A stretch of 64,000 nt of DNA from Glycera tridactyla (taxonomy: Eukaryota): contig OZ286467.1 of NCBI GenBank assembly GCA_965644265.1, positions 55,862,001 through 55,926,000 of the forward strand, given 5' to 3'. The notes under the pieces were generated by a model. The model worked only from the letters and a program-made list of their open reading frames with translations. It had not been told where the DNA came from and did not search any database. The translations under genes were made by a program, and so were the position numbers. Below are positions 156-58,030 of the stretch, in pieces (position 1 is the first letter of the stretch; each line of letters begins with the position of its first letter).

Positions 156-2847
156 CAGGCTTGCTGTCCCTTGGCCATATTGTGTACAGTCGGTGTCAAA
201 GTGGCGGCGGGGGTATTTTTAGTCACCTCTGTGACAAAGCTCTAGTTAGTGCTAATTTATGCTACAAGTTGCAAGTTTGACAGTTCTATGTTCATTCAGA
301 AAAGCGGTTCCTGCTTCAAACCATCCTTGCAAATGGATGCTATATATGGCCAATTCTCCGAAATTGGGGTCAGCTACCGAAAAACATATCTCATGTAAAT
401 TCAGCAGCTTTCACCCAGAATTTGAACATGGTGACTGATGTAATGTGATTCAAACAATAGGTGGTCCAATTTTGATAGGATTATCTCTAATTTTAGTGAA
501 GTTAGAGGCAATTTAATGGTCAATTTAGTGCTCGAAAGAATCAACAAGGTGATAAACAACCTCTGAAAAACGATTTGGCACTTAAAGGGTGACATTCCCA
601 TCAATGGATAACATACCTACGGTCAGAGTTTTAGCATGTTTACAAGCAACAGGTGCCATCTTGGATTGATCACTCCTTTAAATGTGATCCCCGTGCATTC
701 ATGACACTATATATTTTTCCGGTTCCGTTCATAATCTGCTTTATAGTTGATAAAAACGTGCATGGATGTCAATCACAAATTATAGTAACATGCAAACTTT
801 GCATAACATACATATATACTAGGTGATACTAAGCCAAGGGATCTCAGGATAAAGTTGACCTTGTTGGACGGTTGCTCGACATTTGGATGATCCATGCTTT
901 TTCATCCACTGATGGTCACAAATGATCACTGTGGTAAAGGAATATGGATGATGTGAGCATATGAATGTTATTTTGACATAATCTGCATGAGCTACAACCC
1001 AATATGTATGTTATCCTTGACTTTTTTTCTTGAGAGTGGTCATATAAAATCAGATAACTTTGGAAAGTTCTAATGTTTTCAAGCCTATTCAATGATATTA
1101 TGTAAATTTGGATTACTGTGAAAATAAATTTAGCTACTAGCTACTTCTGGTGGCAATTACTGAATGAAATTTACATGAGATAACTCGGGTGTAAAAAATT
1201 GGGGTCAGCAGTAACATACGTCACATAAAATAACATACATATAAGATGATGTTCATTACTTCCCAAATTTTCCAGAGAATGACAAAACCCTGTTCCCATC
1301 ATCTCATCAATATGTATTCAATTGGAATAATGAGTTTGGTACTTGTGCTTATTGTAATTGCTTAGAAAAAAATTAAACACAGCGCCTGAGGATTGAGGAC
1401 AGACATTGTATTTCTGGCTCAAATCCTTTTGAATGACTGACCTTGAGAAGGAAATAAGTAGTGTAGAATGACATCTTAGAACAAAGTTTATCGATTTATA
1501 ATGATAAATGTTAATTCAGAGCAATTTATGAGTGTTTTTGAAAGATTCTTAAAAAAAAAGTAACATACGCAACGGCTGACGACCCCCACTCATGAAAACA
1601 GTGATAATTATTTTTTGGCTCAGCAGATCTCCTCGTTTTTTTTGGTATAAAGACCCAACAAGTGGTGGAACTGTATGGCAATAATGGTTTATCACATGTG
1701 ATTGTTTGAAAAAGTGACCCTATCTGCCACTTTTTGGCCCCATATTGGGAAAATTGGCCATATATGTCTATCCAAAGCCAAGTTACTGCTTCTCAAAGTT
1801 GGGCTACATTCAGACCGGACATTTTATCCGATCATGATGAAACAGAAACGATTCTGTGCAAAATTTTGTTCTGAATAAGGCCACCGGATTTCATTTGAAT
1901 ACATGGGAAAGTGATAGAGTCATGTTTACATGATGACACAAGATGGTCGCATTGTTGCTGCCAGAAATGACCCGGAACCTCCATTTTCGACACTCGCTGT
2001 GAATACTGATCGGATCTCAGACTTGCATACATGTTCAGAAAGATAAAAAGTTGAATCTACTATTGGTATCCTCACATTCGGAATAGGTGCAAAATTAGGC
2101 ATGCGTCATATGCTGCGATTTCATGCTTTTACTATGGTGACAGATATGCGAGCCGAGTCGAGTGGCTATGTTGTATTCCCTACTTGGTATATCACAAAAT
2201 GAATCTACATGCCTCATCTGAGATGAATTAAATAACTTGACAACAAAGAAGATAGTCAGAGATGCTACACTACGATTCAGAAGTAGCATGTATTCTTATC
2301 AGACCAGAATTCTTGTACTTTATGAGTGATGATTCTCTGAAAAATCAAGATTTCTCTTGTTATTCCATTGGAACTACTGGCACTGCTACTCCTTGAAATT
2401 AGCACTGCTACAATATTTGCCCATCAGAGGCAGGCATCTATGGATAGTGATGGTTTTGCTTGAGTAATCAGTTGATTTTTCTGGAAGTGTACAGACATAT
2501 CAAGAGTTGTAGCAAGGGGAGCAGTGGGCCAATTGACACATCTATACCGGTCCACTTTGGCCCCCAGTTGTCATTTGGAGGGATTCCACATATTTTTGAC
2601 TGCACTAGCTGCATCCTTTTTCATTTCACTAAAGCTTCAATAGCAGATTGACCCATACCTTTTCAGCGAAAAGACCCCAGTTGGCCTCACATCTTGAAAC
2701 TCTGTTTTCGTCAAGCCACTTTTGCTGTACTTCATTCTATAGGTCAGCAGAAACAGATAGTCATGAGTTTGATGACAGATTCCTTTAGCTTCTAAATGAA
2801 ACACACACCCCTAGCTTCTTCATTATTATATTGATATATATTCAACT

Positions 2848-3007
2848 TTGAAACCTGCGACGAGAGACCACTTTAAATGTCACCAATAAGTGGTCTCTCA
2901 AAGGAGGTGGTCTCTCATCAAAGGTATGTTTGACTATGTCAAATAGAAATACTGGCCTGGAAAGGTGTTCTACCATAGGAGGTGGTCTCTTGTCGCAGGT
3001 TTCACTG
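2848..3007. mobile_element. Tc1/mariner-type MITE (GAAACCTGCGAC-AGAGACC family)
   Basis: Inverted ends GAAACCTGCGACGAGAGACC / GGTCTCTTGTCGCAGGTTTCACTG followed by TA; related pieces near 7430, 9895-10020 and 27315. Confidence 0.7.
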
Positions 3008-3242
3008 TATAGTGAGAGTACTGGTATTCGTCAAACACAATTGTCTTAATCCCATTCATTCTTCACTGTAGTTGATGTGACTTGACATTTGGCCATGTGC
3101 CAAATAGTCCAGTGGCTTACATTCTTGAGTGTCTAGTGAAATGAGATTATCTGGCTTTATTGATCAGGTGCATGCACTTTGTGTGGCAATTCTGCATTTA
3201 AAACACATAATTTTGCACAGGAAGGTTTTAAGCCATTAAGTA

Positions 3243-3420
3243 CAGTCAAACTTGTCCTGAGCAAGACTTGTACTAAGCAAGAACTCGTCTTAAGCAACAT
3301 GATTCTGTTCATCCCACCAGAGTATTTTTCACTATATTTGACCTGTACTAAGCATGAACTTGCTCTAAGCACAGACATTCTTCATGTCCCGTGGCTTCTT
3401 GCTTAGGACAAGTTTGACTG
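3243..3420. mobile_element. Tc1/mariner-type MITE
   Basis: TIRs CAGTCAAACTTGTCCTGAGCAAG / CTTGCTTAGGACAAGTTTGACTG; TA on the left, TG on the right. Confidence 0.8.
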
Positions 3421-3726
3421 TGCTTTAATAAGCCCCTGGAGACAGTTGGGTTATGATAATCTAACCCTGATAAATTGATTGCTTGAAAACAGGAGCGCAG
3501 GCTGTTCCTTGGCTGTCTTCAGCTCCGAGATTTTCAGACAGCAGCTTTGCGATGAGCATTGCATTTCTTATGGCCACCGCCGGGAAGGCCTGTGGATGAA
3601 TAGGTGAGCTCCAACACTCATTTGTGAGATGGTAGTTGCGTTGCACTGCGCAGCCAGGGGCTAATCTCCTCCCCACTTGTAACCTGGAAATAATAAGCTT
3701 TCCTGTCTTACTAAATTATTCAATCA

Positions 3727-4103
3727 CAGTCAGACCTGCTTGAGAGACCACCTACTTATAAAGACCACCCGCAGGACATTGCTAGCTGTGGGTAGCCAAT
3801 GGCTACCAAATTTACCCTCTGGCTGCCATATTTTAAAAGTTAGGAGCCAGCTGCCCCTAAAATTTTGAGAGTTTGTAATCGGCAATGTATTAACTAGCTA
3901 CCAAAATTTTGCTCTGGCTACCAAAAATTTCAACTTAGGAGCCAGCCGACTCCTAAATATTTTGGCCAATGTAGAGCCCTGCACCCTGAGCTGCAAACAC
4001 TATGGTATTTTCAACAGTAAATTAGCTCTCTGTAAAGTCCACCTGCCAATAAAGGCCACTTTTTGATGTGGCCAAATGTGGCCTTTATACACAGATTTGA
4101 CTG
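3727..4103 (+). mobile_element. Tc1/mariner-type MITE interrupted by a hAT MITE
   Basis: CAGTCAGACCTG ... CAGATTTGACTG+TA; the internal sequence resumes on both sides of the 3772-3981 insert. Confidence 0.75.
3772..3981. mobile_element. hAT-type MITE with ~6-bp TSD
   Basis: Ends CAGGACATTG / CAATGTAGAGCCCTG; internal GGCTACCAAAA repeats; flanks CACCCG / CACCCT, where the uninterrupted family sequence has a single CACCCT (10747). Confidence 0.7.
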
Positions 4104-4848
4104 TAATTCTAATGATGCATTCTTGGCTGCATCCTGCTTCTTCCATGCATACTAAATGGCTGAGGATAAGTCACTAATGAGTCCCAGGGATGCAGTGTCC
4201 AATCTAGAAAATGACTACAAGGGGGAAAATGCCCCACTCTCTGAAAAAGGGGGCATTTTGTGGGAAAAATAGGGGTGATTTGAAGGCCAGGGGGATTTTT
4301 TCAGGCGATGCCATGATCTTTCATATAAATGAAAAAAAAGCTTGGTAGTGTGGCCAGATGAAAATGACTACCCAGTTCTAGCACATGGCATACATGATCC
4401 TCCGTCCTGATACTTGATGTAAAACTCATAGCAATCAGTCAATCAATCAAGTAATGAATCAATCGGTTGTGATGACTAGATCTATCGACTGATGAAATAT
4501 ATTCCGCAGACAAAATGAGCTTGACTACCAGCTCGTACACATAAATAACCCCCTATTCCCTGTAGATCCTTCCTAACCACCCCCTCACTGAGATTGCTTA
4601 GTACTGGGGCTTCCCTTTCAGCACCTCCACCACAGGCTTTTGCTGAATGTATTCAACAAAGATTGGCACCAAGATAGGCACAAAAAATTATGCATTTCTC
4701 AGTGACTCTCTTTTTGTTGCCTCTCATACTGCAAGCTGTAGTGGATAAAAAACAGTGAGGCTTCACACCCTACCATCGTCATCTCAGTTTCATGGGCTTC
4801 CAAATGTACCTGTATCTTGGTTGTTGGGAGAGTGGTGATCTCCTTTGA

Positions 4849-5092
4849 CTGGGAATTCAGGGATGTGCAGAGAAAAAAAAACCTGATGTGTCAAATGACC
4901 CAATGACACAAAATGCAGTGGGTCATTTTGGATTTGAATGGGCCATTCCCTGGTGCGGCACTCTGCACGTCCCTGCGTTCATTGTTCAGAGTGGGTCATT
5001 GGCTCATTGCATCATGTCTCAGTGGGCCAATTCAAATTTGAATGTGGCAAATGGTGCAGGGCCCACCCCTCCGCACATCCCTGGAATTCCTG
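4849..5092. mobile_element. MITE, probably hAT-type
   Basis: Inverted ends CTGGGAATTCAGGGATGTGC / GCACATCCCTGGAATTCCTG; no TSD recognised. Confidence 0.55.
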
Positions 5093-5519
5093 CCAATTCA
5101 TACAGGCCATCTCTGGCATGTCACTGGTCCTTCTCTAGACTAACATTCATAGTATACATTGATAACTATTGTACTTCTGGGCCTGAAGCTTTGTAGAACA
5201 GTCCAAGCAACACCAAGCATAATCTTGTATATAGTACTATAGACATTCATCCTTTCGCTATTGTTCTGCTTGCTCTGTTACATTCACTTGCAATGATTTG
5301 CCGAAATCTTTGGCCAGTGAATCCTACAGGAACACCTTTTTAGAAACGACCTCATTGTACATAGATATGTATTTGATCAGTCAGCGTATGCCTTGACAGA
5401 ATTAAGTTCACCACAATAAGCTGTGTGTTTGATATAAGCAGCAGTAGGACAAATCTTAAACAAAAACACATGGCTGACTGACTTCAATCAAGATAGTAGA
5501 ATCACACAAATGTTCTATT

Positions 5520-5743
5520 CAGGGTTGTATCCAGAGGGGGCATGAGGGCATTTCACACGTTATATGACAGTGGGCCCTTTTCAGGGCAATCAGGAGCCAC
5601 AATGCCCCCTAAATCCACCTAGAGGCTGCACTGTCTGATATCAAGTGAATCCATTTGGGGACATTTTGTGAAGAAATGCCCCCTTCACTTGAATTCAAGG
5701 GGGGCAAATGCCCCCAATTTTAGAAATCCTGGATGCAACCCTG
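5520..5743. mobile_element. hAT-type MITE
   Basis: TIRs CAGGGTTGTATCCAG / CTGGATGCAACCCTG; second copy at 20521-20709; TSD not recognisable. Confidence 0.75.
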
Positions 5744-6682
5744 GTGTATGATTTATGAATCAATGATCAGTCCTGAAATCGTCGCCACTTCTAAATGATG
5801 ATATTGTTGTTGGATGATTGGATACATTCAATGATGCAGTGAAACCTGAAATGAGGGAAAACCATGAATGCACCGTAAAGTGGTCTCATCAGCCTTCAAT
5901 TCAAGCGTTAAATAGGAAAGCTGTGCGAAAAAAGTGCTTTCCCAACAGCGGTGGTACTCCACATACCCTTCCACTTTTGATTACCCTCAATCCATATTGG
6001 ACCCCCTCCCTGGTTCAAAGTAAATATCTAGTGCATGTGGGCATTGCATATAAATTAAGCTTTTTTTTCTGTTTGTAGGTGATAATTTACCCATTGGCGG
6101 AGGTCAACAAATATGTCTACATGGGATAATGAACTGGATAGTACTGTTACATGTTGTTCTATGGTTCTCCTTGAGTACGGCTAACATGAATTACCATCTT
6201 CCGTCCTGAGTAAAATGCTGGAATCATCTCCGGATATAATAATCAGAATCATTCAAGTAATCTGTTCTTCAAGAAATAACATCCCCAGAATGGAATCGTG
6301 GATACACCCAAAGTGAACTCTCAACTCTTCAGGATAACATGTATTAGACCTAATATTACTAAGAACTGAATTTTGGATGCCTATTCCATATTTTGTTTCA
6401 TGGAACTAACACTCGTTATGGTAGGAGCCTGTGGAGTCGCTGTCTGTGAATCCTAATTCTGTGAAATATTGCCTACTTCTAACAGCATTAATGAAGATCT
6501 CATCGGAGTATGACTACTATACAGTATTGCTGGGGCTGGCTACATTGTCCTCACTGTGAGTATGGGATCAAGAAGTAAAGTAGTCTGTATCTACATTTGT
6601 CAACAAAGTTGGATGATATCTCAATATATGAATCCACTTATGCATAGAACTACACAGACCTCAGTATCCTCAATGGGGGCTA

Positions 6683-19188: not shown

Positions 19189-20103
19189 CAGAAATGACAC
19201 CTCAGGAGTCTGTGAATTTCATAAATTTTCACCTATTGACCCGGGAGGAGGAGTCTTGGATGATCCCTCCCATGCCCATCTTATGGGCGTCACAATATAG
19301 CACAGCTGCAGCTGACGTGACGTTAACCCCCAACCGACCAGTGTTCATAAAAATAGCGATTCTAATAAGGCAATGGATGGACATTCTTTGGCATGTCAGC
19401 CAGCCAAGTGAAGGTTAGTGAATTTCACTGCGTAACAAAGTGGCCAGAAATAGCTGGCCTAGTGGAAGCCATATGAATCAATCACATTTTCACGGGGTGA
19501 CACCGTGGTCAACATTTTTGAAAACAGAAATGGCACCTTGAGTGTCACTGAGTTTCATGAATATTCACCTTCTGTTTGGGATCTAGAGGGAGGAGTCTTG
19601 AATGACACTACCCCTGCCAATTGCGTGCATAACACAATATAGAAGACCAGATGGTGCCCACGAACGTAAGAGTAACGAACTACCAAACAACCAATCAGTC
19701 AAGACTTTGAGACTAAAGATTATATGATCCCAGGAATGACACCTTGAGTGTACCAGGGGAAGAGTTGGCCCCACGTTTCCCTACGTGTTGTAAGAGGCGA
19801 CTAAGTGGGCATCCCAGAAACGACACCTCGGGTGTGTCTGTGAATTTCATAAATTTTCACCTTCCGTTTGGGACCCAGAAGGAGGAGTCTTGGAAGATCC
19901 CACCCACGCTCATTGCATGGACGTCACAATATAGTTCAAATGGTGCTGATGTGACGTTAAATCACAACCAACCAACCACCTTGAGAGTCTGTGTATTTCA
20001 TGAATTCTCTACCCAGAAGGAGTCTTAAGTGATCCCACCCACGCCCATTGTATGGGCGTCACAGTATAGCACATAAATCGCTTACGTGACGTTGAACCAG
20101 AAG
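19189..20103 (+). mobile_element. Head-to-tail cluster of family A copies (about 19189-19340, 19405-19700, 19733-19760, 19816-19980, 19981-20103)
   Basis: Repeated AATGACACC, GTGAATTTCATAAATTTTCACC, GGAGGAGTCTT and GGGCGTCACAATATAG blocks, all on the + strand. Confidence 0.8.
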
Positions 20104-24299: not shown

Positions 24300-24369
24300 C
24301 AATTTGAGGCCAGTCAACTGATCCCACTTTCACCGCATGATACAGTGGCCAAGAATAAATATCCTAGTG
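24300..24369 (+). mobile_element. 5' part of a family A copy split by the hAT transposon
   Basis: CCAGTCAACTGATCCC..TACAGTGGCCAAG..CCTAGTG continues at 34515 as CTAGTGGAAGCCAT, matching the unsplit copy near 19440-19470. Confidence 0.8.
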
Positions 24370-24576
24370 CAGTGTTCGCGAAAAGTTTTTGACCACGTCT
24401 GACAAATTGTCAGACGTGATTTTGCCTCACGTCTGACAATTTCACATCACGTCTGACAATCATGTCAGACGTGATTTTGCTCCACATCTGACAATTTTGC
24501 GTCCTGTCTTGACATTTTTACATTATCTGGTTCAACAAAACACAACATAACAGGATGGAACAATATATTGATACCC

Positions 24577-24582
24577 TTTATT
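24577..24582 (-). promoter_or_regulatory. Candidate polyadenylation signal of the transposase gene
   Basis: AATAAA on the - strand, ~150 nt after the stop codon and inside the left TIR. Confidence 0.45.
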
Positions 24583-24731
24583 TGGGGGAAAATAAAGGGA
24601 GAAAACAACCATTGCACATAAAACAAATCGAAAATATGTCGAGAAGCCAATCACACATCGCCATCACCATCGCCGTGATACCCGTTAGGGGTTTTTGCGA
24701 TCACGCTACAGAAACACAATTCCTATTCCTC

Positions 24732-27700
24732 TCAGTCAAGCTCTGCCTGGTAGTGTTTCACCAGTTTCTCATTGGTGGCAAAGTCCTGTTCATCATAGGA
24801 CTCATAGCCGAGATCCATGTCTGGGTCTTCTTCCCAGTCTGAGTCTGAGTCATCTTCAGCACTTGTCACTGGTAGAGGACGAGCAATCTCTTCTGTGTGT
24901 GGTTCAGCTTCGATCTCCTCACTCGCATCAATGCTGGCTGCAGCTGCATCCGGCACAACAGCAGACTTCACCTGTCTCTTGTAGTTCACCCGCCTGCGAG
25001 TTCCACCTGGAGTGACCTGCAAAGCACATCAGGATATTTTGAGTTGTAGAAGATATTGTGATTAATTGTTTTGTCTCCAAATACTGTTGAGTGACTATAA
25101 ATTGAGATTTTGATCTTGTTTCAGGTACCACCGAAACGCTCCTAGCAGAACTCAAGGCTGTTTACATCTGATGACAACAGATACAGCTCCTCTGCAGAAC
25201 AGCAACACCACCGACCAGAAATAAAATTTCCATTTTGCAGAATGCTGATACATTTTTCAGGGTCTCAATGAGTGGATTATCTCCATATGACGTAAACTCT
25301 GAGCGAGATCAGGAAAGTTTTCAGGGATCACTATTGTGCCGTTGGATTAATTTGCCTGACAGAATGGAGCAAAATGAGATTAAATTGGCATGTGATGAAG
25401 GCAGTTTGAGGCAGATTCCACCCCACAGGTAGATAATTTGATTTCCTCTTGCACTATTATGAGGATCAAATCAATGTAACTACCAGCACTCCAGTTAAGG
25501 CTGATTCTTGTTCAGAAACTTAACGTGTCACCAGCTTCAAAGGAAGCCCACATGAAGAACTAGGCATTAAGGTATGACACTCACCAACCATCGATCGATC
25601 GCCTTGTCAGGGTTGAATGCAGAAATATCTGGCCCATTCAGTCTCACCGCCATGATGTTATTCAGCCGATCTTGGCCGAGTCTGTGCCGCCGCTCTGTTT
25701 TGATGAGTTTTAACTGACTGAATGCCATCTCATTCACAACAGATGTTGGTGGTAACGCCAAGATTAGGTCAACTAGCTTCAGGGCATTGTCAACCCCCAT
25801 TCCTTGCATTGCCCTGTTGATGTCAAGCCAGTTCTGCTCAGCCAACTTCTTGCCATGACTGTAAAAAAAAAGAACCCAGGTACAGCAAAATCACTGTAAA
25901 TACCACCTTAGCTAAGATGACTCACTATCAAATGCCCCCCCCCCCCCCAACCACCAACTTATTTGATCAGATGAAGAAGCCGTTATGGTATTTTTGGAAA
26001 ACATGGTGACTGAATTTTGCAGTTCTCCGGATCCTTGTTTGCAAGCATTGGCTCTATGAATCATGCATGGGGGGATGCCCAAGCAATTTGTCCCATTTTC
26101 ATTTAACAAACTGCAATTGACATATCTCAGTCTGGACACTCACCTGCGATACAACAAAGTACGCAGTATACACCACTCGTTCAGTAACTGGTGATGCGCA
26201 ATTTCGCTTTCTTGGCTGAAGAAATGTTTCGCCAATATGTCAACTTCCTCCTCACCAAAATCTGAAACATGCAAAAATACAATTATCTATATGCTAGGTC
26301 CCAGTATTCTCTTGTTGCTTGTATCAGCCCCAAACTTTACCAATTGCATGGATGGAGATACATATGAATATTGATTGATACCATCTTTTATGTGCACACC
26401 AGATGCGTCGGATGTAAGTTTAAATCCAGTTACTCGTGCATGGATCCACAAGTCAAATATATCAATTTGGCCTAGTTGAGACCAGTGAACTGATCCCATG
26501 TTTGCTGCGTAATACAGTGGCCAAAGAGGAGTCATATCAGCCTGCCCATGTCCATTGCATGGCCATCACTATACATCACAAATGGAGCTGACTTGACATT
26601 AAGCAGGGCTTTATGCTAATGGTTCCCCTACTGGCACAGGCAGGCAGATTTGCTGTTAGGGCAGGTGATTTTATCAATCTGCCTGCCCGATGGGCAGGTA
26701 CCCAATCATTATTCAGCCTATGATTATATGTAGGAGGGCAGGTGAAAAGGACAGCTGAAGAAAAATGTTAAAGTAGAGCCCTGTTAAATCCTCAACAAAC
26801 AAATTAAGGGAATTCACAATCTTAACTAAATCGAATCAACTCTCAACAACATGCCAAATCAACTCTCAACAACATACCAATTCAACTCTCAACAACATGC
26901 TGACATTGATTCATTAACCTTGACTCATATTAGCTGGCCACTGCCTGAAACTGGCTATCCTTGTTGCTGATATCACTGGAGATTCAAGGTCTGTGTAGCG
27001 GGTCTCCACACATGATACAACAGCCTCCAGGAGAGCTGACTTGTATTTCAAGGTAGGGGCACCACCACGCAGCTTGCACCCCTGGAAACTCACTTCATCC
27101 TTTGAATCCAAAAGAGCCTGAAGTGCTGGGTTGTTCCTGTGAGAATGTGATTCAAAATTGACATCATACGCAAAGATCACATTGCATTTGAAATCACCTA
27201 AGACATGATTTTGTATCAACAAACATGGGTACTGAAATTGAACAGGGGTTTTCATGGTGATTTGTGTGAAATATGTCAAGAGACTGAAAGTACTCATATT
27301 TCATCATTAAACAGATCAACCTGCGACGAGATCACCTCTGAGGGGAGACCATTCTGTATCATCCAATTTCAGGTGGGCAGGTAGAAATTCAATATAAATG
27401 ACTTGCATACATAAGCAGGACAGGTGGGCAGGTTGATTTTCCTGATGTCTTTTTGCCGGATGAGATTAACACTTAATATCAAATTCACTGATACTTACAA
27501 TGTCTTCAACTGTGAAATCATGTCCATTGTTGTCTGGCTGATGGTGTAAACTTCACTCAGGCATGCATCCACCTTCTGAAGCCACAGCGACAGCATGCCC
27601 AGTGGCCGCAGAACATCCTGGAAGCAAAGAAAAACAGCCCAATTTTGAAACAACTATAGCATATCAGTGTTTCCAGTACATCCTGTGATCAAAATGAAGT

Positions 27701-30700
27701 CAGCATGGGGAAAAAACACCTGCCAGGTATGTATCAAATAAACCTGCCCCATATAAATTCAGCCTTCCCCATCATACGACCATTGCAATTTTTCCCACCT
27801 GTTCTTAAAACAGATGAATTGATAATCAACCTGTCTAGCTGTCTGTGAGTGGTGCCAGAAGGAAACATTGTCATGAAACCCAATAATCTTGGACCATCCA
27901 GCCATGAAAAGTGAGATGATATGAACATCACAGGCACTTGAAATGTCATTTCAGAAATGAGCAACAGGGAAAGATTGACCTCACCTTCAGGAGGAGAATG
28001 AAGGCAACATTCTCAGCTCGGGTCAATAGCTTCACCAGACCCTCTGCTTTGGCATTGTAATGGGAGGCATCCTGCAGACAATGTACGATAGGCGCAAATG
28101 CACGAATGCACCAATCGATGGCTCGTTTCATGTGCCCCATCCACCTGGTTCCGCCAACTCTGGGGGGCATGAGGGGTGTCTTTCCAAGCATCTCGAATGT
28201 TTTTCGGAGAAGTCTCCTCTGCTTGCTGCTCCTCTTGAAGAAATAATACAAGCCGACTAAGAGGGTCAGCACCTGGTCGTACAGCTTGGGCGCAGCCTTT
28301 TTGATGGCATCCTTGTACCCGAGTTCCAGTCTGTGTGCTAAACAATGAATGACAATCAAAGCTGGGTGGCGCTCTTGCAAGAGTGCTGCAAGTCCTTTCT
28401 TGCGGCCAAGCATGTTGGAGGCACCATCACAGCTGAAGCCAACAAACTTGTCCATGTAACCGTCAAGACCAGCCTGATGTAAAGTGCTGCATACCACTTC
28501 GAAGAGTGCTGCTGATTCAGTTGAGTCTGGCTCAACAATCTTCAGGAACTTTGTTTCAGCCTCCCCCTTTGTGACAAAACGCACAAATAGCGTCTCTTGC
28601 TCTGTGCTACTGATATCCGTTGCTCCATCCATGGTGAGGCTGAAGTAGCTGCAGTGCTGAATACAGTCATTAAGATGCGATGTCTCCACCTCAGCAATCG
28701 AGTCAATGAATAAGCCACCTGAATGGGGATTCCGGTACGTACATCCCACATCCAACCCTTTCGCCTCATCCAGGTCTGCCAGCCATTCCACGTCTTTGAT
28801 CGGCCGATTCTTCTTGGCTATGGCATGGGCATTTCGAAAGAGAATTTGGAGTCGCGACCTCTCATTCTCCTTCAGCTGAATCAAGGCCTTCCCTGCAGCA
28901 GAGGCGGATGCTCCCACATTACTTGAAGACTGCTGTGCCCTTGCGACTGCTGCAATCTTCTGGTGGGCCTTTGACATCTCATGATCAGTGATGGCTGACT
29001 TCTTAAAGTTGTTGGTCCCCTCAATGAAGCTGCCCTCTTTCTGCATAACCTTCAGGCGACTGTCAGTGGCCAGCTCCTTAAGGTCGCAACAGAATTTGCA
29101 GAACATGAGGTTCTTCGCACAATCATGGATCAGCCAATCTCTTCCGACTTGCCAGCTGCTCTGTGAAAAAAAAGGAGAGATGGTCAGCATATGCATCTCA
29201 GAAGCATCTATTCTGGCACATCCAGCCTGGTTCCTGCAATTTCTGAATTTCCATTTTCGCTAAATTTTCAGAAAATTGGCGTCACTGACCCACTCAACAC
29301 CACCCACACGTGGGCTAATGGTTGCCCTACTAGCATCGGGCAGGTAATTTTATCAGTCTGCTATGAATCTTCATGCTGGGTGTGTGTGTAAGGGGGGGGG
29401 GGGTGAATATGATACTTCACCTGAAGACAGCTAAAGAAAAAAGCTAATTTTTAGAGAAATTCATGCTTATTCCAAATGAAAACTAGAACTGTAATCCAGA
29501 GGATGACTAACAGGTGGGGGACTGGCCTGTTATTTCAGTACGTCCTGTGATCAGGGGATGGTGGGTGTACTGTAATCACAGGATGTACTGGGATTCCAGT
29601 ACACTCTGCAGTGCTGAGTGGGTTTTGGGTAAATAACCAAGTGTGTTCATAATTTCTCTTTTATTGTGATTTTCATCATCTGTACAGTACTGACATGACA
29701 ACACTGTATTTTCTGGTTCAGGGAAGTCCAAAATTGTCGCAGTTGTGTCAGGTGGTACAGAATTACATACCATAGTAGCATAGGTACATTTCTCATGATT
29801 TTTCATCACATGTTTGAGATGTTTCTCCATTTACAGCATAATTGTTCCAGAAACCGTAAAATCAAATAGTCTCAATAAAAAGAGGATGATGTCCAAAGGT
29901 AGGTTGTAGCTTGTAGTTTTGAAATAGATCTATTGAGGGATGGGTTAATTCATTTTTTTCACCTTTGTGTCGAATGCGGTCGGTCAAGAACCATCGAATA
30001 CATGATTCATCAAATTGTGTGTGTGTGTGTGGGGGGGGGGGGGAAGGTTGATGGTTCAAATCCAATACAAGCCAAAAAATAATTTGGAACACATTTCATG
30101 GACCTGTTGCCAGTACAAGCTGGGAATATGTCTCTGACATGATTTCTATCACTAAAAAAATGTGTGTGTGTATGTGTGTGTGTGTGTGTGTGTGCGCGCG
30201 CATAATCCTCTATGTTGATACATGCATTTAACATCAACCAATCATCACATGTTTGAGATGTTTCTCCATTTACAGCATAATTGTTCCAGAAACCGTAAAA
30301 TCAAATAGTCTCAATAAAAAGAGGATGATGTCCAAAGGTAGGTCGTAGCTTGTAGTTTTGAAATAGATCTATTGAGGGATGTGGGACTCAACCAGGAAGT
30401 TACTTTTGCGTCCATCAGGGTTTCATTTACCCCTGCGTCCTGCGTCATACACGAATCAAATCACATCCGGGACCCATCATACTGCCAATCCACCTACCTA
30501 CCCACCTACCCACCCACCTATCCACTCACCTGCCCATCCACCATTCTACCCACCCATCCACCCACCACTCTACCCACATACCCATCCACCTACCCACCAC
30601 TCTACCCACCCACCCACATACCCAAGCACCTACCAACCCACCCACACGTGGGTGGGTGGGTAGGTGGATGGTTAGATGAGTGTGTAGGTGGGTGGGTGGG

Positions 30701-33700
30701 TGGTTAGGTGAGTGAGTGGGTGAGGTGAGTGGGTGGGTGGGTGGGGTGGTGAGTGGGTGGGTGGTTGAGTGGGTCATTGAGGTGAGTGGGTGGGGCAGTG
30801 AGTGGGTGAGGTGAGTGGGCAGGTGGGTTGGTGAGTGAGTGGGTGGGTGGGCAGGTGGGTGTGGTGAGTGGGCAGGTGGTTGTGGTGAGTGGGTGGGTCA
30901 GTGAGGTGAGTGGGTGGGGCAGTGAGTGGGTGAGTGGGTGGGTGGGGGGGGGTGAGTGGGCAGGTGGGTGTGGTGAGTGGGCAGGTGGTTGTGGTGAGTG
31001 GGTGGGTCAGTGAGGTGAGTGGGTGGGGCAGTGAGTGGGTGAGGTGAGTGGGGGGGTGGTGAGTGAGTGGGTGGGTGGGGGGGTGAGTGGGTGGGTGAGG
31101 TGAGTGGGTGGGTGGGTCAGTGAGGTGAGTGGGTGGGTGGGCAGGTGAGTGAGTCAGTGAGGTGAGTGGGCTGGTGGGTGAGTGGATGGGTGGTTGAGTG
31201 GGTCATTGAGGTGAGTGGGTGGGGCAGTGAGTGGGTGAGGTGAGTGGGCAGGTGGGTTGGTGAGTGAGTGGGTGGGTGAGGTGGGTTGGTGAGTGAGTGG
31301 GTGGGTGGGCAGGTGGGTGTGGTGAGTGAGTGGGTGGGTGAGTGGGCAGGTGGTTGTGGTGGGTGGGTGGGTCAGTGAGGTGAGTGGGTGGGGCAGTGAG
31401 TGGGCAGGTGGGTTGGTGAGTGAGTGGGTGGGTGAGGTGGGTTGGTGAGTGGGTGGGTCAGTGAGGTGAGTGGGTGGGTGGGCAGGTGAGTGAGTCAGTG
31501 AGGTGAGTGGGCAGGTTGGTGTGGTGGGTGAGTGGATGGGTGGTTGAGTGGGTCATTGAGGTGAGTGGGTGGGGCAGTGAGTGGGTGAGGTGAGTGGGCA
31601 GGTGGGTTGGTGAGTGAGTGGGTGGGTGAGGTGGGTTGGTGAGTGAGTGGGTGGGTGGGCAGGTGGGTGTGGTGAGTGAGTGGGTGGGTGAGTGGGCAGG
31701 TGGTTGTGGTGGGTGGGTGGGTCAGTGAGGTGAGTGGGTGGGGCAGTGAGTGGGCAGGTGGGTTGGTGAGTGAGTGGGTGGGTGAGGTGGGTTGGTGAGT
31801 GGGTGGGTCAGTGAGGTGAGTGGGTGGGTGGGCAGGTGAGTGAGTCAGTGAGGTGAGTGGGCAGGTTGGTGTGGTGGGTGAGTGGATGGGTGGTTGAGTG
31901 GGTCATTGAGGTGAGTGGGTGGGGCAGTGAGTGGGTGAGGTGAGTGGGCAGGTGGGTTGGTGAGTGAGTGGGTGGGTGGGCAGGTGGGTGTGGTGAGTGG
32001 GCAGGTGGTTGTGGTGAGTGGGTGGGTCAGTGAGGTGAGTGGGTGGGGCAGTGAGTGGGTGAGTGGGTGGGTGGGGGGGTGAGTGGGTGGGTGAGGTGAG
32101 TGGGCGGGTGGGTGGGGTGAGTGGGCAGGTGGGTGTGGTGAGTGGGTGGGTCAGTGAGGTGAGTGGGTGGGGCAGTGAGTGGGTGAGGTGAGTGGGGGGG
32201 TGGTGAGTGAGTGGGTGGGTGGGGGGTGAGTGGGTGGGTGAGGTGAGTGGGTGGGTGGGTCAGTGAGGTGAGTGGGTGGGTGGGCAGGTGAGTGAGTCAG
32301 TGAGGTGAGTGGGCTGGTGGGTGAGTGGATGGGTGGTTGAGTGGGTCATTGAGGTGAGTGGGTGGGGCAGTGAGTGGGTGAGGTGAGTGGGCAGGTGGGT
32401 TGGTGAGTGAGTGGGTGGGTGAGGTGGGTTGGTGAGTGAGTGGGTGGGTGGGCAGGTGGGTGTGGTGAGTGAGTGGGTGGGTGAGTGGGCAGGTGGTTGT
32501 GGTGGGTGGGTGGGTCAGTGAGGTGAGTGGGTGGGGCAGTGAGTGGGCAGGTGGGTTGGTGAGTGAGTGGGTGGGTGAGGTGGGTTGGTGAGTGAGTGGG
32601 TGGGTGGGCAGGTGGGTGTGGTGAGTGAGTGGGTGGGTGAGTGGGCAGGTGGTTGTGGTGGGTGGGTGGGTCAGTGAGGTGAGTGGGTGGGTGGGCAGGT
32701 GAGTGAGTCAGTGAGGTGAGTGGGCTGGTGGGTGAGTGGATGGGTGGTTGAGTGGGTCAGTGAGGTGAGTGGGTGGGGCAGTGAGTGGGTGAGGTGAGTG
32801 GGCAGGTGGGTTGGTGAGTGAGTGGGTGGGTGAGGTGGGTTGGTGAGTGAGTGGGTGGGTGGGCAGGTGGGTGTGGTGAGTGAGTGGGTGGGTGAGTGGG
32901 CAGGTGGTTGTGGTGGGTGGGTGGGTCAGTGAGGTGAGTGGGTGGGGCAGTGAGTGGGCAGGTGGGTTGGTGAGTGAGTGGGTGGGTGAGGTGGGTTGGT
33001 GAGTGGGTGGGTCAGTGAGGTGAGTGGGTGGGTGGGCAGGTGAGTGAGTCATTGAGGTGAGTGGGCAGGTGGGTGTGGTGGGTGAGTGGATGGGTGGTTG
33101 AGTGGGTCATTGAGGTGAGTGGGTGGGGCAGTGAGTGGGTGAGGTGAGTGGGCAGGTGGGTTGGTGAGTGAGTGGGTGGGTGAGGTGGGTTGGTGAGTGA
33201 GTGGGTGGGTGGGCAGGTGGTTGTGGTGAGTGGGGCGGTGAGTGGGTGGGTGGGCGAGTGAGTGGGTGGGTGAGGTGGGTGGGGCAGTGAGTTGGTAGGG
33301 TGGGTGGGTGGGTGAGGTGAGCGAGTGGGAGGATGGGTGAGTGGGTGGGCAGGTGAGTGAGTGAGTGATGGTCGGCGTGGTCATGATCTTGGTCACTCAC
33401 GAAACCTGCAGTGATCTTGGTCACTGCAGGTAGATCAGGGCGAGAAGACATCCTGAAAATCCACCTGCCCCCCCTGGAAAATCCACCTGCCCTGCTTATA
33501 TATGTAAGTCATTTATGTTCATTCTCCACCTGCCCACCTGAAAAATCTACCTGCCCCGGGCAGGTGGGCGGCTATCTCTTCTCGCCCTGTAGATGGGTGT
33601 GGATTTGTGGTAGCTGTGGTAGCCAGCTGTTAGCCCCTGTTCCCTTCCCCCCCCCCCCCAATCACCCACCAACCCACCCACCCCCACATGTTAATTTTGA

Positions 33701-33953
33701 TGCACTTGCATTGAAAATCAGCGAATACACAGAATAATAACACAAAAAAAGCTACCTGAAATTTTCTGATTGTTGGCTTCTTTCTCTCCTGGTTGCCCGT
33801 TGATTCATCCAGTCTTCCCTTTTTCATCTCCTGGCTACTTGGTGATGCTTCCAGTTGTCTCTTTGCTTCCCTGCTGGGGCCAGGCACTGGTGATTGTGGC
33901 TCTGAGGCTGGCTTCCCAGGCCTTGGAGTTCTCTTGACAAACTTGTCCATCAT
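24732..33953 (-). CDS. hAT-family transposase (ZNF862/DUF4371-like), 7 exons, 795 aa predicted
   Basis: Exons 33953-33756, 29160-27985, 27617-27499, 27136-26919, 26261-26144, 25858-25585 and 25016-24732; all introns GT-AG with compatible phases (0,0,2,1,2,0); 2388 nt with no internal stop found. Motifs: TTF-like zinc finger (RKFQ|SSW..FCKFC..DHEMSKAH), TMDGATD, SCDGASNM, HCLAHRLEL, and dimerisation domain LPPTSVVNEMAFS. Confidence 0.88.
26478..26603 (+). mobile_element. Internally deleted family A copy in transposase intron 4
   Basis: GACCAGTGAACTGATCCC..CAGTGGCC joined to GCCCATGTCCATTGCATGG..GGAGCTGAC-TGACATTAA. Confidence 0.7.
26604..26783. mobile_element. hAT-type MITE inserted in the family A tail, ~5-bp TSD
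   Basis: CAGGGCTTTA / TAGAGCCCTG; flanks TTAAG / TTAAA; GGCAGGT repeats; related remnant at 29311-29352. Confidence 0.7.
27365..27460 (-). mobile_element. Partial reversed copy of the 17362/33436 MITE in intron 3
   Basis: CAGGTGGGCAGGTAG..AAATGACTTGCATACATAAGCAGG is the reverse complement of the MITE core. Confidence 0.7.
29804..30381. repeat. 139-bp direct duplication (29804-29942 and 30243-30381)
   Basis: Near-identical, with one T/C difference seen; the spacer contains (GT)n and poly-G runs. Confidence 0.9.
30481..33368. repeat. GGGT/GAGT-rich satellite in transposase intron 1, with a short inverted C-rich arm and ~350-bp higher-order period
   Basis: C-rich at 30481-30644, CACGTG at 30645-30650, G-rich thereafter; marker GGATGGGTGGTTGAGTGGGTCA at 31184, 31534, 31884, 32327, 32738 and 33088. 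Confidence 0.95.
33436..33589. mobile_element. hAT-type MITE with 5-bp TSD TAGAT (hAT5-like)
   Basis: Perfect TIR CAGGGCGAGAAG / CTTCTCGCCCTG; TAGAT at 33431-33435 and 33590-33594. Confidence 0.9.
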
Positions 33954-34059
33954 CAAAGTTCTCCCCTCCAAACCGCTGATCAGTGACAATCACTGGCTAT
34001 AATTGAGTCACTGATTCATGGGATCGTTCACTGATGATTAGATGATTTCCTCACTTCTG

Positions 34060-34500
34060 TGAAAACACACGAAAGAGCGCGAAACCGCCGGTTTTTGTAA
34101 GCGCCACCTCTCGTAACGTGACGAATTTGCCGATTACCACGTTCCACTAGTCCCGGTTTTTATTCTTCATTGTATACAAGAAATACGACCGTCAAAACAA
34201 TTCGGGATTAGGGTAAATCGAATTTGTAACACGCACGCTGATTGGTCAATATTTCGTATATCCGGTTTTCTCGGCCAATCAGAATCGAGGAGACATTCGG
34301 TGTCGGCTTCATGCCAGAACAAAATGGCGGCGCGCAGTCGATCGTATCAACGCGAAATAAATTGTTTTCGCTGTCGGATTTCGCCACAAATGGCATGGAT
34401 TTTTCGCCCGAACGTGACGCCGGACATCGTGTCAGACGTGAAAGTAAGCCACGCCGGTCAATTTATCAAAACGACGGATTTGTCCGACGGTCCGACGTGT
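34060..34500. promoter_or_regulatory. CpG-rich candidate promoter of the transposase
   Basis: Directly upstream of exon 1; ATTGG at 34241-34245, CCAAT at 34275-34279, YY1-like AAAATGGCGG at 34321-34330. Confidence 0.5.
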
Positions 34501-34514
34501 TTTCGCAAACACTG

Positions 34515-34745
34515 CTAGTGGAAGCCATGTTAGTCAATCCCATGTTCACGGGGTAACACTATGGTCAACATTTTTACCAACAGGAATGACACCCGGAGTG
34601 TCTGTGAATTCCATAATATTTCACCTTCTATTGGGACCCAGAAGGATGTGTCTTAGATGATCCCACCCATGGCTCATTGCATGGGCATCACAATATAGCA
34701 CAAATGGAGCTGACGTGACGTTACAACAGGACCAACCAACCAACA
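34515..34745 (+). mobile_element. 3' part of the family A copy split by the hAT transposon
   Basis: CTAGTGGAAGCCATG..AATGACACC..GCATGGGCATCACAATATAGC..GTGACGTTA plus CAAC tail. Confidence 0.85.
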
Positions 34746-34799
34746 GTCATCACCAAAACCGCCACCAAGTGCTGCGCTTTGCAAAAAAAAACATTGCTA

Positions 34800-48254: not shown

Positions 48255-48915
48255 AGGTCCAGTGAACTAACTCGATGTTCACTGCACAGTGGAAGCCAAT
48301 TGAATCAATCCTATGGAAATAGGGTGATATTATGAAATACATTTTAATAACAGGAATGACACACTGACTGTCTGTGAATTTCATGGATTTTCATCCTCCG
48401 TTGGCGGTGGAGTCTTAAATTATCCCATCCATACCTATGCCCATTGCATTGGCGTCACAATATATCATATATGGCGCTGACATGATGTTGAACCACAACC
48501 CAGCAATCAACCTATTATATATGACGCTCACCTGATGTTGAACCACAACCAACCAATCAACCTATTATATATCACGCTCACCTGATGTTGAACCACAACC
48601 AAACAATCAACTTATTATCAACCTATTATGTTGTTGAACCACAACCAACCAATCAACCTATTATATATGGCGCTCACCTGACGTTGAACCACAACCAACC
48701 AACCAACCAACCTATTATATATGGCGCTCACCTGACGTTGAACCACAACCAACCAACCAACCAACCTATTATATATGGCGCTCACTTGACGTTGAACCCC
48801 AACCAACCAATCAACCTATTACATATGGCGCTTACCTGACGTTGAACCACAACCAACCAATCAACCTATTATATATGGCACTCACCTGTCGCTGAACCAC
48901 AACCAACTAACTAAT
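48255..48915 (+). repeat. Family A copy whose 3' end is amplified into a ~45-52-bp minisatellite (about 9 units)
   Basis: Unit TGACGTTGAACCACAACCAACCAATCAACCTATTATATATGGCGCTCACC repeated from ~48470. Confidence 0.85.
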
Positions 48916-55109: not shown

Positions 55110-55400
55110 TAGAAATTAGTTAACTGATCCCATGTTCACTGCGTAACACAGTGGCAAAAATGAACTGACCCAGTGGAAGCCATGTGGATCAATCCCATGT
55201 TCACAGGGTAACACTGTGGTCAACAGTTTTGATAAGAGGAGTGACACCTTGAGCCTCTGTGAATCTCATAAATGTTCGCCTTCTGTTGGGGGGCCCAGAA
55301 GGAGGAGTCTTGAATGATCCCACTTGTAGCCATTGCATGGGCGTCACAACATAGCACAAATGGAGCTGACGCGACTTTAAAACAGAATCAACTAACCAAC
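55110..55400 (+). mobile_element. Family A copy (long form)
   Basis: AACTGATCCCATGTTCACTGCGTAACACAGTGG through GCATGGGCGTCACAAC-TAGC and CAAC tail. Confidence 0.85.
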
Positions 55401-55694
55401 CGTATGCATGTTGAAGAACCACCGTTATCCTGGCAAGGAGTAGGGTATTTCCCCCGATAGTCGTGCCTCATTTCCTCAGACTTTCCAGTTTTTCTGATAT
55501 AACCCATGGTTGAAAGGACGTTAAGACCAAACAAACAAGCATACAAACAAGCAAACGGAAAAGAAGCCAGTATATAGATAATCTGCCCATCTCTACTACC
55601 AAATTGTCTTGAATGACACCCATAGCAATTCATCATATTAAGGCTCAGAGACTGAAATAGTGTGGGTTCATGCAATAATTCTGCCTGTCCACAA

Positions 55695-57165: not shown

Positions 57166-57807
57166 TTTGAAAAGTGAAGAATTCCGAATTGGTTCGCATG
57201 CGAGAGACACCATACATTTGGACATTTGTTACTTGACCATGAATGAACTATCACGTATGGAGAAAAACAACCCAATGTGCGAAAAAAAACGACACAACCT
57301 CTCATGGAAGTTGATTCAACAGGACGCAAGCATGTTAATTACACGCAGGTGTTATGGTAAAGGCAGAGGTAGTGACAATCATTGCATATTGCCTCATGAA
57401 TGAAGTGGCGGGTGGCATGGAATCGCTGAGGTTTCTTATTTGTACGTATCATATGTATCATGCATATAGAATGCTGCAGGCATACTATTGATAAGTCTCG
57501 TGTCAAAGTTGGATCTCATCTGCGATGTGTAATAACAACCCATAGTGGACAACCTCATTAGCGGCAGTGACCTCGCATCAAGGACAAGTAGAAAAAATAC
57601 GCAGATGACTCACCAATAATGATCCGATTTTATTTCAAAACTGAGAAAAATGTTGATTTGTGTATTCTTGTCTCATTGGTCATGTTACTTCCGCCATTGT
57701 TCATCTGCGCAAATAAACTTTTTCACTGAAACTGGAATGAGTGGGCGGGGAGATATCAATATCACACGTTAGAATATTTCACAGCCATCAAATACAGCCA
57801 AATGGAG

Positions 57808-58030
57808 GTCAAGTCAGCTGATCCCTTGTTCTCAGGGTAACAATGTGGCCAACATCTCTGGTACCAGGAATGAAACATTGAGTGTCAGTGAATTTTCTGA
57901 AAATTCACCTTCCGTTGGGGCCCTGAAGGGTGAGTCATGAATGGTCCCACCCCTGCCCATTGCATGGGTGTCACAATATAGCATGTATGACGCTGACGTG
58001 ATGTTAAATCAAAAACAACCAACCAACCTG
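57808..58030 (+). mobile_element. Family A copy
   Basis: CTGATCCCTTGTTC..GCCCATTGCATGGGTGTCACAATATAGC..GTGATGTTAAA plus tail. Confidence 0.8.

Follow-up and report, generated by a model that had tools for sequence, protein, structure and literature searches.

hAT transposons usually, though not universally, duplicate 8 bp of target DNA on insertion. Two groups which make shorter target site duplications (TSDs), hAT5 (5 bp) and hAT6 (6 bp), were named by Kapitonov and Jurka (2007, Repbase Reports 7:1192–1204), as cited in passages of PMC12730594; these passages add hAT7 as a further exception in TSD length, and place hAT5 and hAT6 within an animal hAT lineage that includes Blackjack. Because such exceptions exist, a 6-bp TSD does not exclude membership of the superfamily. 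Here we describe an element with a 6-bp TSD, 10,145 bp in length, which occupies positions 24370–34514 of a 64-kb window (C26:55,862,001–55,926,000 of a 2.04-Gb animal genome; the window is this whole stretch of analysed DNA, and positions are counted from its first letter). The element belongs to the ZNF862/C17orf113-like branch of the hAT superfamily and is most suitably classed as a new member, probably still active, of the known hAT6 kind, since the 6-bp TSD is the defining trait of that group. It is a new example of a rare, named and little-studied kind and not a new kind, and as such is not surprising to a transposon specialist. Our reading, to which we assign a probability of roughly 0.8, is that the window holds a copy of a cut-and-paste hAT family which is young and autonomous.

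The likeness to hAT6 lies in the hAT-type transposase, the short CAG-initiated terminal inverted repeats (TIRs) and the 6-bp TSD, the assignment being made by this last trait and not by a protein tree. The family is unlike hAT6 in that its members are unusually long (7.5–12.3 kb), with six introns and a variable minisatellite in the first of them. With hAT5 it shares a non-canonical short TSD in an animal hAT lineage, but the duplication is 6 bp where that of hAT5 is 5 bp. As in the intron-bearing autonomous hATs Ac, Tol2 and BuT2 (for BuT2, PMC3942097), there is a transposase gene with predicted splicing, together with short derivatives sharing the element ends in the manner of MITEs (miniature inverted-repeat elements); those three elements, however, are 2.5–5 kb long with 8-bp TSDs, whereas the window element has double that length, a larger number of introns and a 6-bp TSD. 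The vertebrate domesticated genes ZNF862, KIAA1586 and C17orf113 are of the same transposase lineage, as judged from the names of homologues and the zf-C17orf113 finger, but these are immobile single-locus host genes without TIRs, whilst the window family is multi-copy and has TIRs, TSDs and non-autonomous derivatives. In the literature on hAT6, ZNF862-like hATs and 6-bp TSDs we found no paper placing ZNF862-like elements relative to hAT6.

An earlier note on this DNA had claimed a complete hAT element with both TIRs and subterminal repeats, and the ends are indeed as described. The 15-bp TIRs match at 14 of 15 positions and begin CAGTG, which fits the superfamily pattern YARNG, and their length is within its 10–25 bp range. 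The subterminal motif CACGTCTGACA, when at most one mismatch is allowed, occurs eight times in the window as against 1.1 times expected by chance, and in 100 shuffles the count never came up to eight. Six of the eight sites fall in the outermost 125 bp at the left end, and one is 75 bp in from the right end (Table 1); the subterminal motifs are likely to be binding sites for the transposase.

The duplication itself had been deduced in the earlier note from an unsplit copy of the surrounding repeat near 19460, and this deduction holds. When the flanks of the element are joined and one CTAGTG is removed, they align without gaps across the junction to the unsplit copy near 19451; the same joined flanks also match unsplit copies of the host repeat at 55118–55403, 57803–58027 and 48288–48511. 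The bases adjoining CTAGTG differ, being TC/TG on the left and CA/GA on the right, and because the neighbouring bases on neither side extend the repeat, the duplication is exactly 6 bp. The host repeat split by the element (24312–24369 and 34521–34747) is a high-copy dispersed family with at least ten partial copies in the window. A 49-bp fragment of it, 82% identical, also lies inside the element, at 26476–26524 in intron 4, and is present in all element copies.

We then turn from the single copy to the family. The ends of all relatives returned by a search of the element's own genome were surveyed by comparing their flanks, which gave 22 natural end pairs, short relatives included. Copies with 8-bp TSDs were what the earlier note had said would speak against it; instead, 6 bp is the sole fitting duplication length in 17 of the 22 pairs. 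The 6-bp duplication is therefore a trait of the whole family, and not of the window copy alone. Three of the five exceptions are a pair with a 5/6 match, a pair shifted by one base and an old short copy whose flanks do not match; the other two are full-length copies, and are weighed below. No target-site consensus is visible among 18 six-mers, nor did the comparison of flanks reveal an insertion site common to the copies.

The transposase gene was modelled from six minus-strand blocks with homology to longer relatives and an ATG-initiated block near the right end. The seven predicted exons total 2388 nt, equal to 795 codons plus the stop, with no internal stops, and all six predicted introns are GT–AG with good pyrimidine tracts, in agreement with the previous description of seven in-frame exons encoding 795 aa. 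Splicing is predicted from sequence, and comparison with relatives supports the junctions used. The exon peptides abut exactly on a continuous 645-aa homologue (P0020) at 308/309, 346/347, 462/464 (a split codon) and 552/553, and on a further homologue (P0034) at 421/422. In addition, the consensus R-x-F-x-x-x-W-x-x-x-R-x-W-L of 35 relatives spans the exon 1/2 junction with the correct spacing.

Domain and homology searches were run exon by exon, and not on the joined 795-aa protein. Exon 2 matches the Pfam family zf-C17orf113 (PF25431) with 34.6 bits (cut-off 29.5), and an R-x-F...W...R-x-W-L...C..C zinc-finger consensus is common to the 35 relatives. Exon 6 matches Dimer_Tnp_hAT (PF05699) with 25.0 bits (cut-off 21.4, E 1.7e-5). 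A word search returned 96 homologues, the best of which is 55% identical; those with names are labelled ZNF862-like or KIAA1586-like, and come mostly from bivalves, Lingula and Ptychodera. The catalytic residues which had been listed for this protein, namely both Asp, the CxxH motif and the Glu, are all borne out by the relatives. In an alignment of 36 sequences both Asp (D178 and D245 of exon 2, at about residues 244 and 311 of the whole protein) are invariant, as are C273-x-x-H276 and a following Glu, and the Glu of NEMAFS (exon 6, at about residue 653) is conserved. One detail did not stand. The sequence EMAFS had been regarded as departing from the usual ERxFS, but in place of the Met, T, K, T and T are found in the four full-length relatives that are closest, and only the Glu is conserved; EMAFS is therefore normal for this branch, not an oddity.

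The fold of exon 2 is that of a hAT transposase. An AlphaFold (AF2) model of exon 2 has a predicted local distance difference test score (pLDDT) of 88, and all 11 of its best fold matches in the PDB are to Hermes, the hAT transposase of Musca domestica (PDB 2bw3, 4d1q and 8sjd), with E values of 5e-6 to 1e-4 and a probability of 1.0. Hermes is the best and only strong fold match of the catalytic exon. Both proteins have the motifs D, D, CxxH and E in that order, the Glu following the helical insertion domain and lying beside the C-terminal dimerisation region, but they are only 12–15% identical and are not matched in sequence searches. They differ also in that Hermes has an 8-bp TSD, a BED finger and a single-exon gene, whereas the window family has a 6-bp TSD, a C17orf113-type finger and seven exons.

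Other copies, for which the earlier note had proposed a search, were found. The transposase of the window family is present at nine places in the genome, and in at least six of these all seven exons are open and every splice site is kept. The window copy differs from two sister copies at 6 of 6031 nt (minisatellite excluded) and from the most distant intact copies at ∼0.9%, the intact copies being 0.1–0.9% apart overall. The flanks are mutually unrelated between copies, and thus it was transposition that gave rise to the copies, not segment duplication. Substitutions between copies are mostly synonymous, with a ratio of non-synonymous to synonymous differences per site (pN/pS) of 0.09–0.28. 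For example, between the window and C1 copies 11 of the 524 synonymous sites are changed, as are 9 of the 1855 non-synonymous ones (Fisher p = 0.0013). As the differences are mainly synonymous, the lineage has been kept under selection for a working protein while diversifying. With six intact copies so close to one another at unrelated sites, and pN/pS below 0.3, the claim that the element was recently active is upheld; that the window element is potentially active today we infer. The C1 copy is without the first of the two adjacent ATGs.

If the window element is a copy of an autonomous family, hAT biology would lead one to expect transcription of the minus strand to proceed from the right end, followed by removal of the six introns. 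The 795-aa transposase, with its N-terminal zinc finger, its RNase-H-like DDE core interrupted by a helical insertion domain, and its C-terminal hAT dimerisation domain, would bind the 15-bp TIRs and the subterminal CACGTCTGACA motifs and excise the element. Reinsertion would take place with a 6-nucleotide stagger, repair of which would give the 6-bp duplication.

Several observations weigh against this reading. Two full-length copies are among the TSD exceptions: one is embedded in a run of (TAA)n, which allows 4, 7 or 10 bp but not 6 bp, and the other, at C26:100.04M, has unrelated flanks. Exon 2, queried as a single exon, scores 23.1 bits against DUF4371 (PF14291), for which the cut-off is 32.1; this domain, which belongs to the N-terminal half of the catalytic core, is present in most homologues according to precomputed annotation. 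When PDB sequences were searched with exon 2 by itself, and with a profile of 36 sequences, only chance matches came up, and the link to Hermes consequently rests on the fold and on the Pfam C-terminal domain. Lastly, at two residues the window copy stands apart from the other five intact copies, none of which has its changes Q462R and F533L. These changes could point to a family which moved recently and is now silent, or to a window copy which is dead, a coding-intact passenger, whether through epigenetic silencing, through Q462R and F533L themselves or through dependence in trans on a sister copy. The size of 10 kb and the 2.7-kb minisatellite of intron 1 could likewise hamper expression or transposition. 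We consider such a state unlikely, given how few nucleotides separate the window copy from its two sisters; moreover its TSD and TIRs count as perfect (the TIRs at 14/15), and neither change falls in an invariant column of the catalytic exon.

It might also be asked whether this is a transposon at all. A family of ZNF862-like host genes, domesticated and multiplied through segmental duplication, would be in keeping with the seven exons, the low pN/pS and the naming of relatives as host genes in databases. Such a family is highly improbable when copies end at the same inverted repeats, each with its own 6-bp duplication, when their flanks are unrelated and unsplit target paralogues exist, and when short non-coding derivatives share the element ends. 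We give equally little credence to the idea of mis-set boundaries, with the element being in truth an 8-bp hAT of the canonical sort or a member of another 6-bp superfamily. Passages of PMC12730594 and PMC3706591 do describe IS3EU and Dada as typically making 6-bp duplications, but the protein is a hAT transposase by its Pfam dimerisation domain and its Hermes-like fold, whilst the gapless empty-site alignments fix the boundaries and in 17 end pairs only 6 bp fits. A young autonomous hAT family remains the reading that we prefer.

Table 1. Positions of the element's features in the window, and places of its copies in the genome
Feature	Position	Strand	Basis
Left TSD, CTAGTG	24364–24369		Sequence read, empty-site alignment, TSD survey
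Left TIR, 15 bp, reads CAGTGTTCGCGAAAA	24370–24384	+	Sequence read, end comparison
Left subterminal array, six CACGTCTGACA motifs in both orientations, putative transposase-binding sites	24394–24493		Motif count
AATAAA, candidate polyadenylation signal, ∼150 nt past the stop codon	24577–24582	-	Sequence read
Exon 7, acidic C-terminal tail and stop codon	24732–25016	-	Splice model, homologue comparison
Exon 6, hAT C-terminal dimerisation domain and catalytic Glu (NEMAFS)	25585–25858	-	Pfam PF05699, alignment of relatives
Exon 5	26144–26261	-	Homology block, splice model
Exon 4	26919–27136	-	Homology block, splice model
Exon 3	27499–27617	-	Homology block, splice model
Exon 2, 392 aa, C17orf113-type zinc finger, RNase-H-like core (both Asp, CxxH), start of helical insertion domain	27985–29160	-	Pfam, alignment, AF2 fold
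G-rich minisatellite in intron 1, 2.7 kb, period ∼29–37	30648–33367		Repeat analysis, copy comparison
Exon 1, coding part, 66 aa, begins ATG ATG, ends RKFQ	33756–33953	-	ATG-initiated block, splice model
Two CCAAT/ATTGG boxes, candidate promoter, ∼300 bp 5' of the ATG	34238–34287	-	Sequence read
Right subterminal CACGTCTGACA motif	34430–34440	-	Motif count
Right TIR, reads CAGTGTTTGCGAAAA on the minus strand	34500–34514	-	Sequence read, end comparison
Right TSD, CTAGTG	34515–34520		Sequence read, empty-site alignment, TSD survey
Unsplit host-repeat paralogue, empty-site reference, single CTAGTG at 19451–19456	19423–19642	+	Alignment
Intact copies	Window (C26:55.89M), C47:13.07M, C26:100.04M, C7:4.09M, C4:19.59M, C1:81.37M		Exons open, splice sites kept
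Decayed copy	C4:111.06M		Stops and frameshift
Decayed copy	C17:22.43M		∼8–12% diverged, broken
Interrupted copy	C26:16.84M		Cut by 100-N assembly gap

Two of the copies have flanks of particular structure. The full-length copy at C26:100,038,945–100,048,154 (L004, L033, L062) has GTACAT on its left and GAGACC on its right. This GTACAT matches the right flank of an inverted copy at C26:16,843,313–16,850,875 (L034, L070, L071), which is cut in exon 2 by the 100-N gap. Such a pattern is as expected from an 83-Mb inversion between the two copies, or from an assembly switch in a 99.9% identical repeat; the odds of a chance 6/6 flank match among ∼100 comparisons are ∼2%. The C47 copy (L061; C47:13.065M and 13.073M; L003, L032) is flanked by inverted repeats, 82% identical over ∼190 bp, and so was inserted into a palindromic or foldback repeat.

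The intron-1 minisatellite, with a GC skew of +0.6 on the plus strand, explains most of the spread in size among the element copies. It lies at the same place in each of them (L061–L071) and its length is different in every copy, so it must have expanded and contracted after the copies separated. Also in intron 1, a direct repeat of 140 nt, 99% identical (29803–29942 and 30242–30381, 439 bp apart), is found around a (GT)n-rich stretch.

At least 40 short non-coding relatives of 0.7–2.8 kb are present in the genome (L009–L030 and L041–L060; for example C34:17,316,405–17,318,180), and a search with the left end gave 345 candidates at first look. The short relatives share with the 10-kb element only its first ∼100–150 bp and its last ∼40–100 bp, at ∼80% identity, and likewise have 6-bp duplications. 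Two short elements on C18, 5,141 bp apart (57,690,845–57,692,287 and 57,695,986–57,697,428; L030, L052, L053), have identical flanks and the same CCCACT duplication; this pair is a tandem segmental duplication carrying the element, and not two insertions. Further ZNF862-like transposase families with open frames also occur in the genome, at about six places with 54–58% identity and about 12 with 40–41%. More distant again are four frames of 818 aa without interruption, at 31%, and numerous places at 24–29%. The genome is rich in young elements of the ZNF862-like branch.

Complete relatives were also found in two metagenome contigs. One (L076, positions 1598–6034) is 4.4 kb long and 39% identical in exon 2; its ends, of the CAGTGT type, start CAGTGTGGCAC, and it is flanked by a 5-bp duplication, CAGTA. 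The other (L116, positions 245–3969) is 3.7 kb long and 25% identical, with a 740-aa uninterrupted frame and an 8-bp duplication, CACTTAAT. Between them the two have TIRs of the CAGTGT/CAGGGT type. Each of these duplications is a single observation. At a third metagenome locus (L073) a candidate TIR and TSD was rejected as a likely chance match, being A/T-rich and not YAR-initiated. The two complete relatives agree with the literature, which sets hAT5 and hAT6 within an animal lineage making 8-bp duplications, and suggest that the stagger is changeable in this branch. It is possible, though we hold this tentatively and rather doubt it, that TSD length, which reflects the stagger of strand transfer, has changed repeatedly within one ZNF862-like hAT lineage, with 8 bp in L116, 5 bp in L076 and 6 bp in the window family, whose ends are of a related CAGTGT type.

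For annotation, these findings mean that seven-exon 'ZNF862-like genes' of this type are transposon genes and not host genes. It is uncommon in animals for DNA transposons to be coding-intact and near-identical, and those that are so provide raw material for studying ongoing genome change and for gene-transfer tools. To our knowledge, Hermes, with its 8-bp duplication, is the source of all that is known structurally about target joining by hATs, and work on the 6-bp hATs has gone little beyond naming them. The family described here, which has six intact copies, clear ends and numerous short derivatives, offers a practical start for testing how a DDE transposase sets the target stagger.

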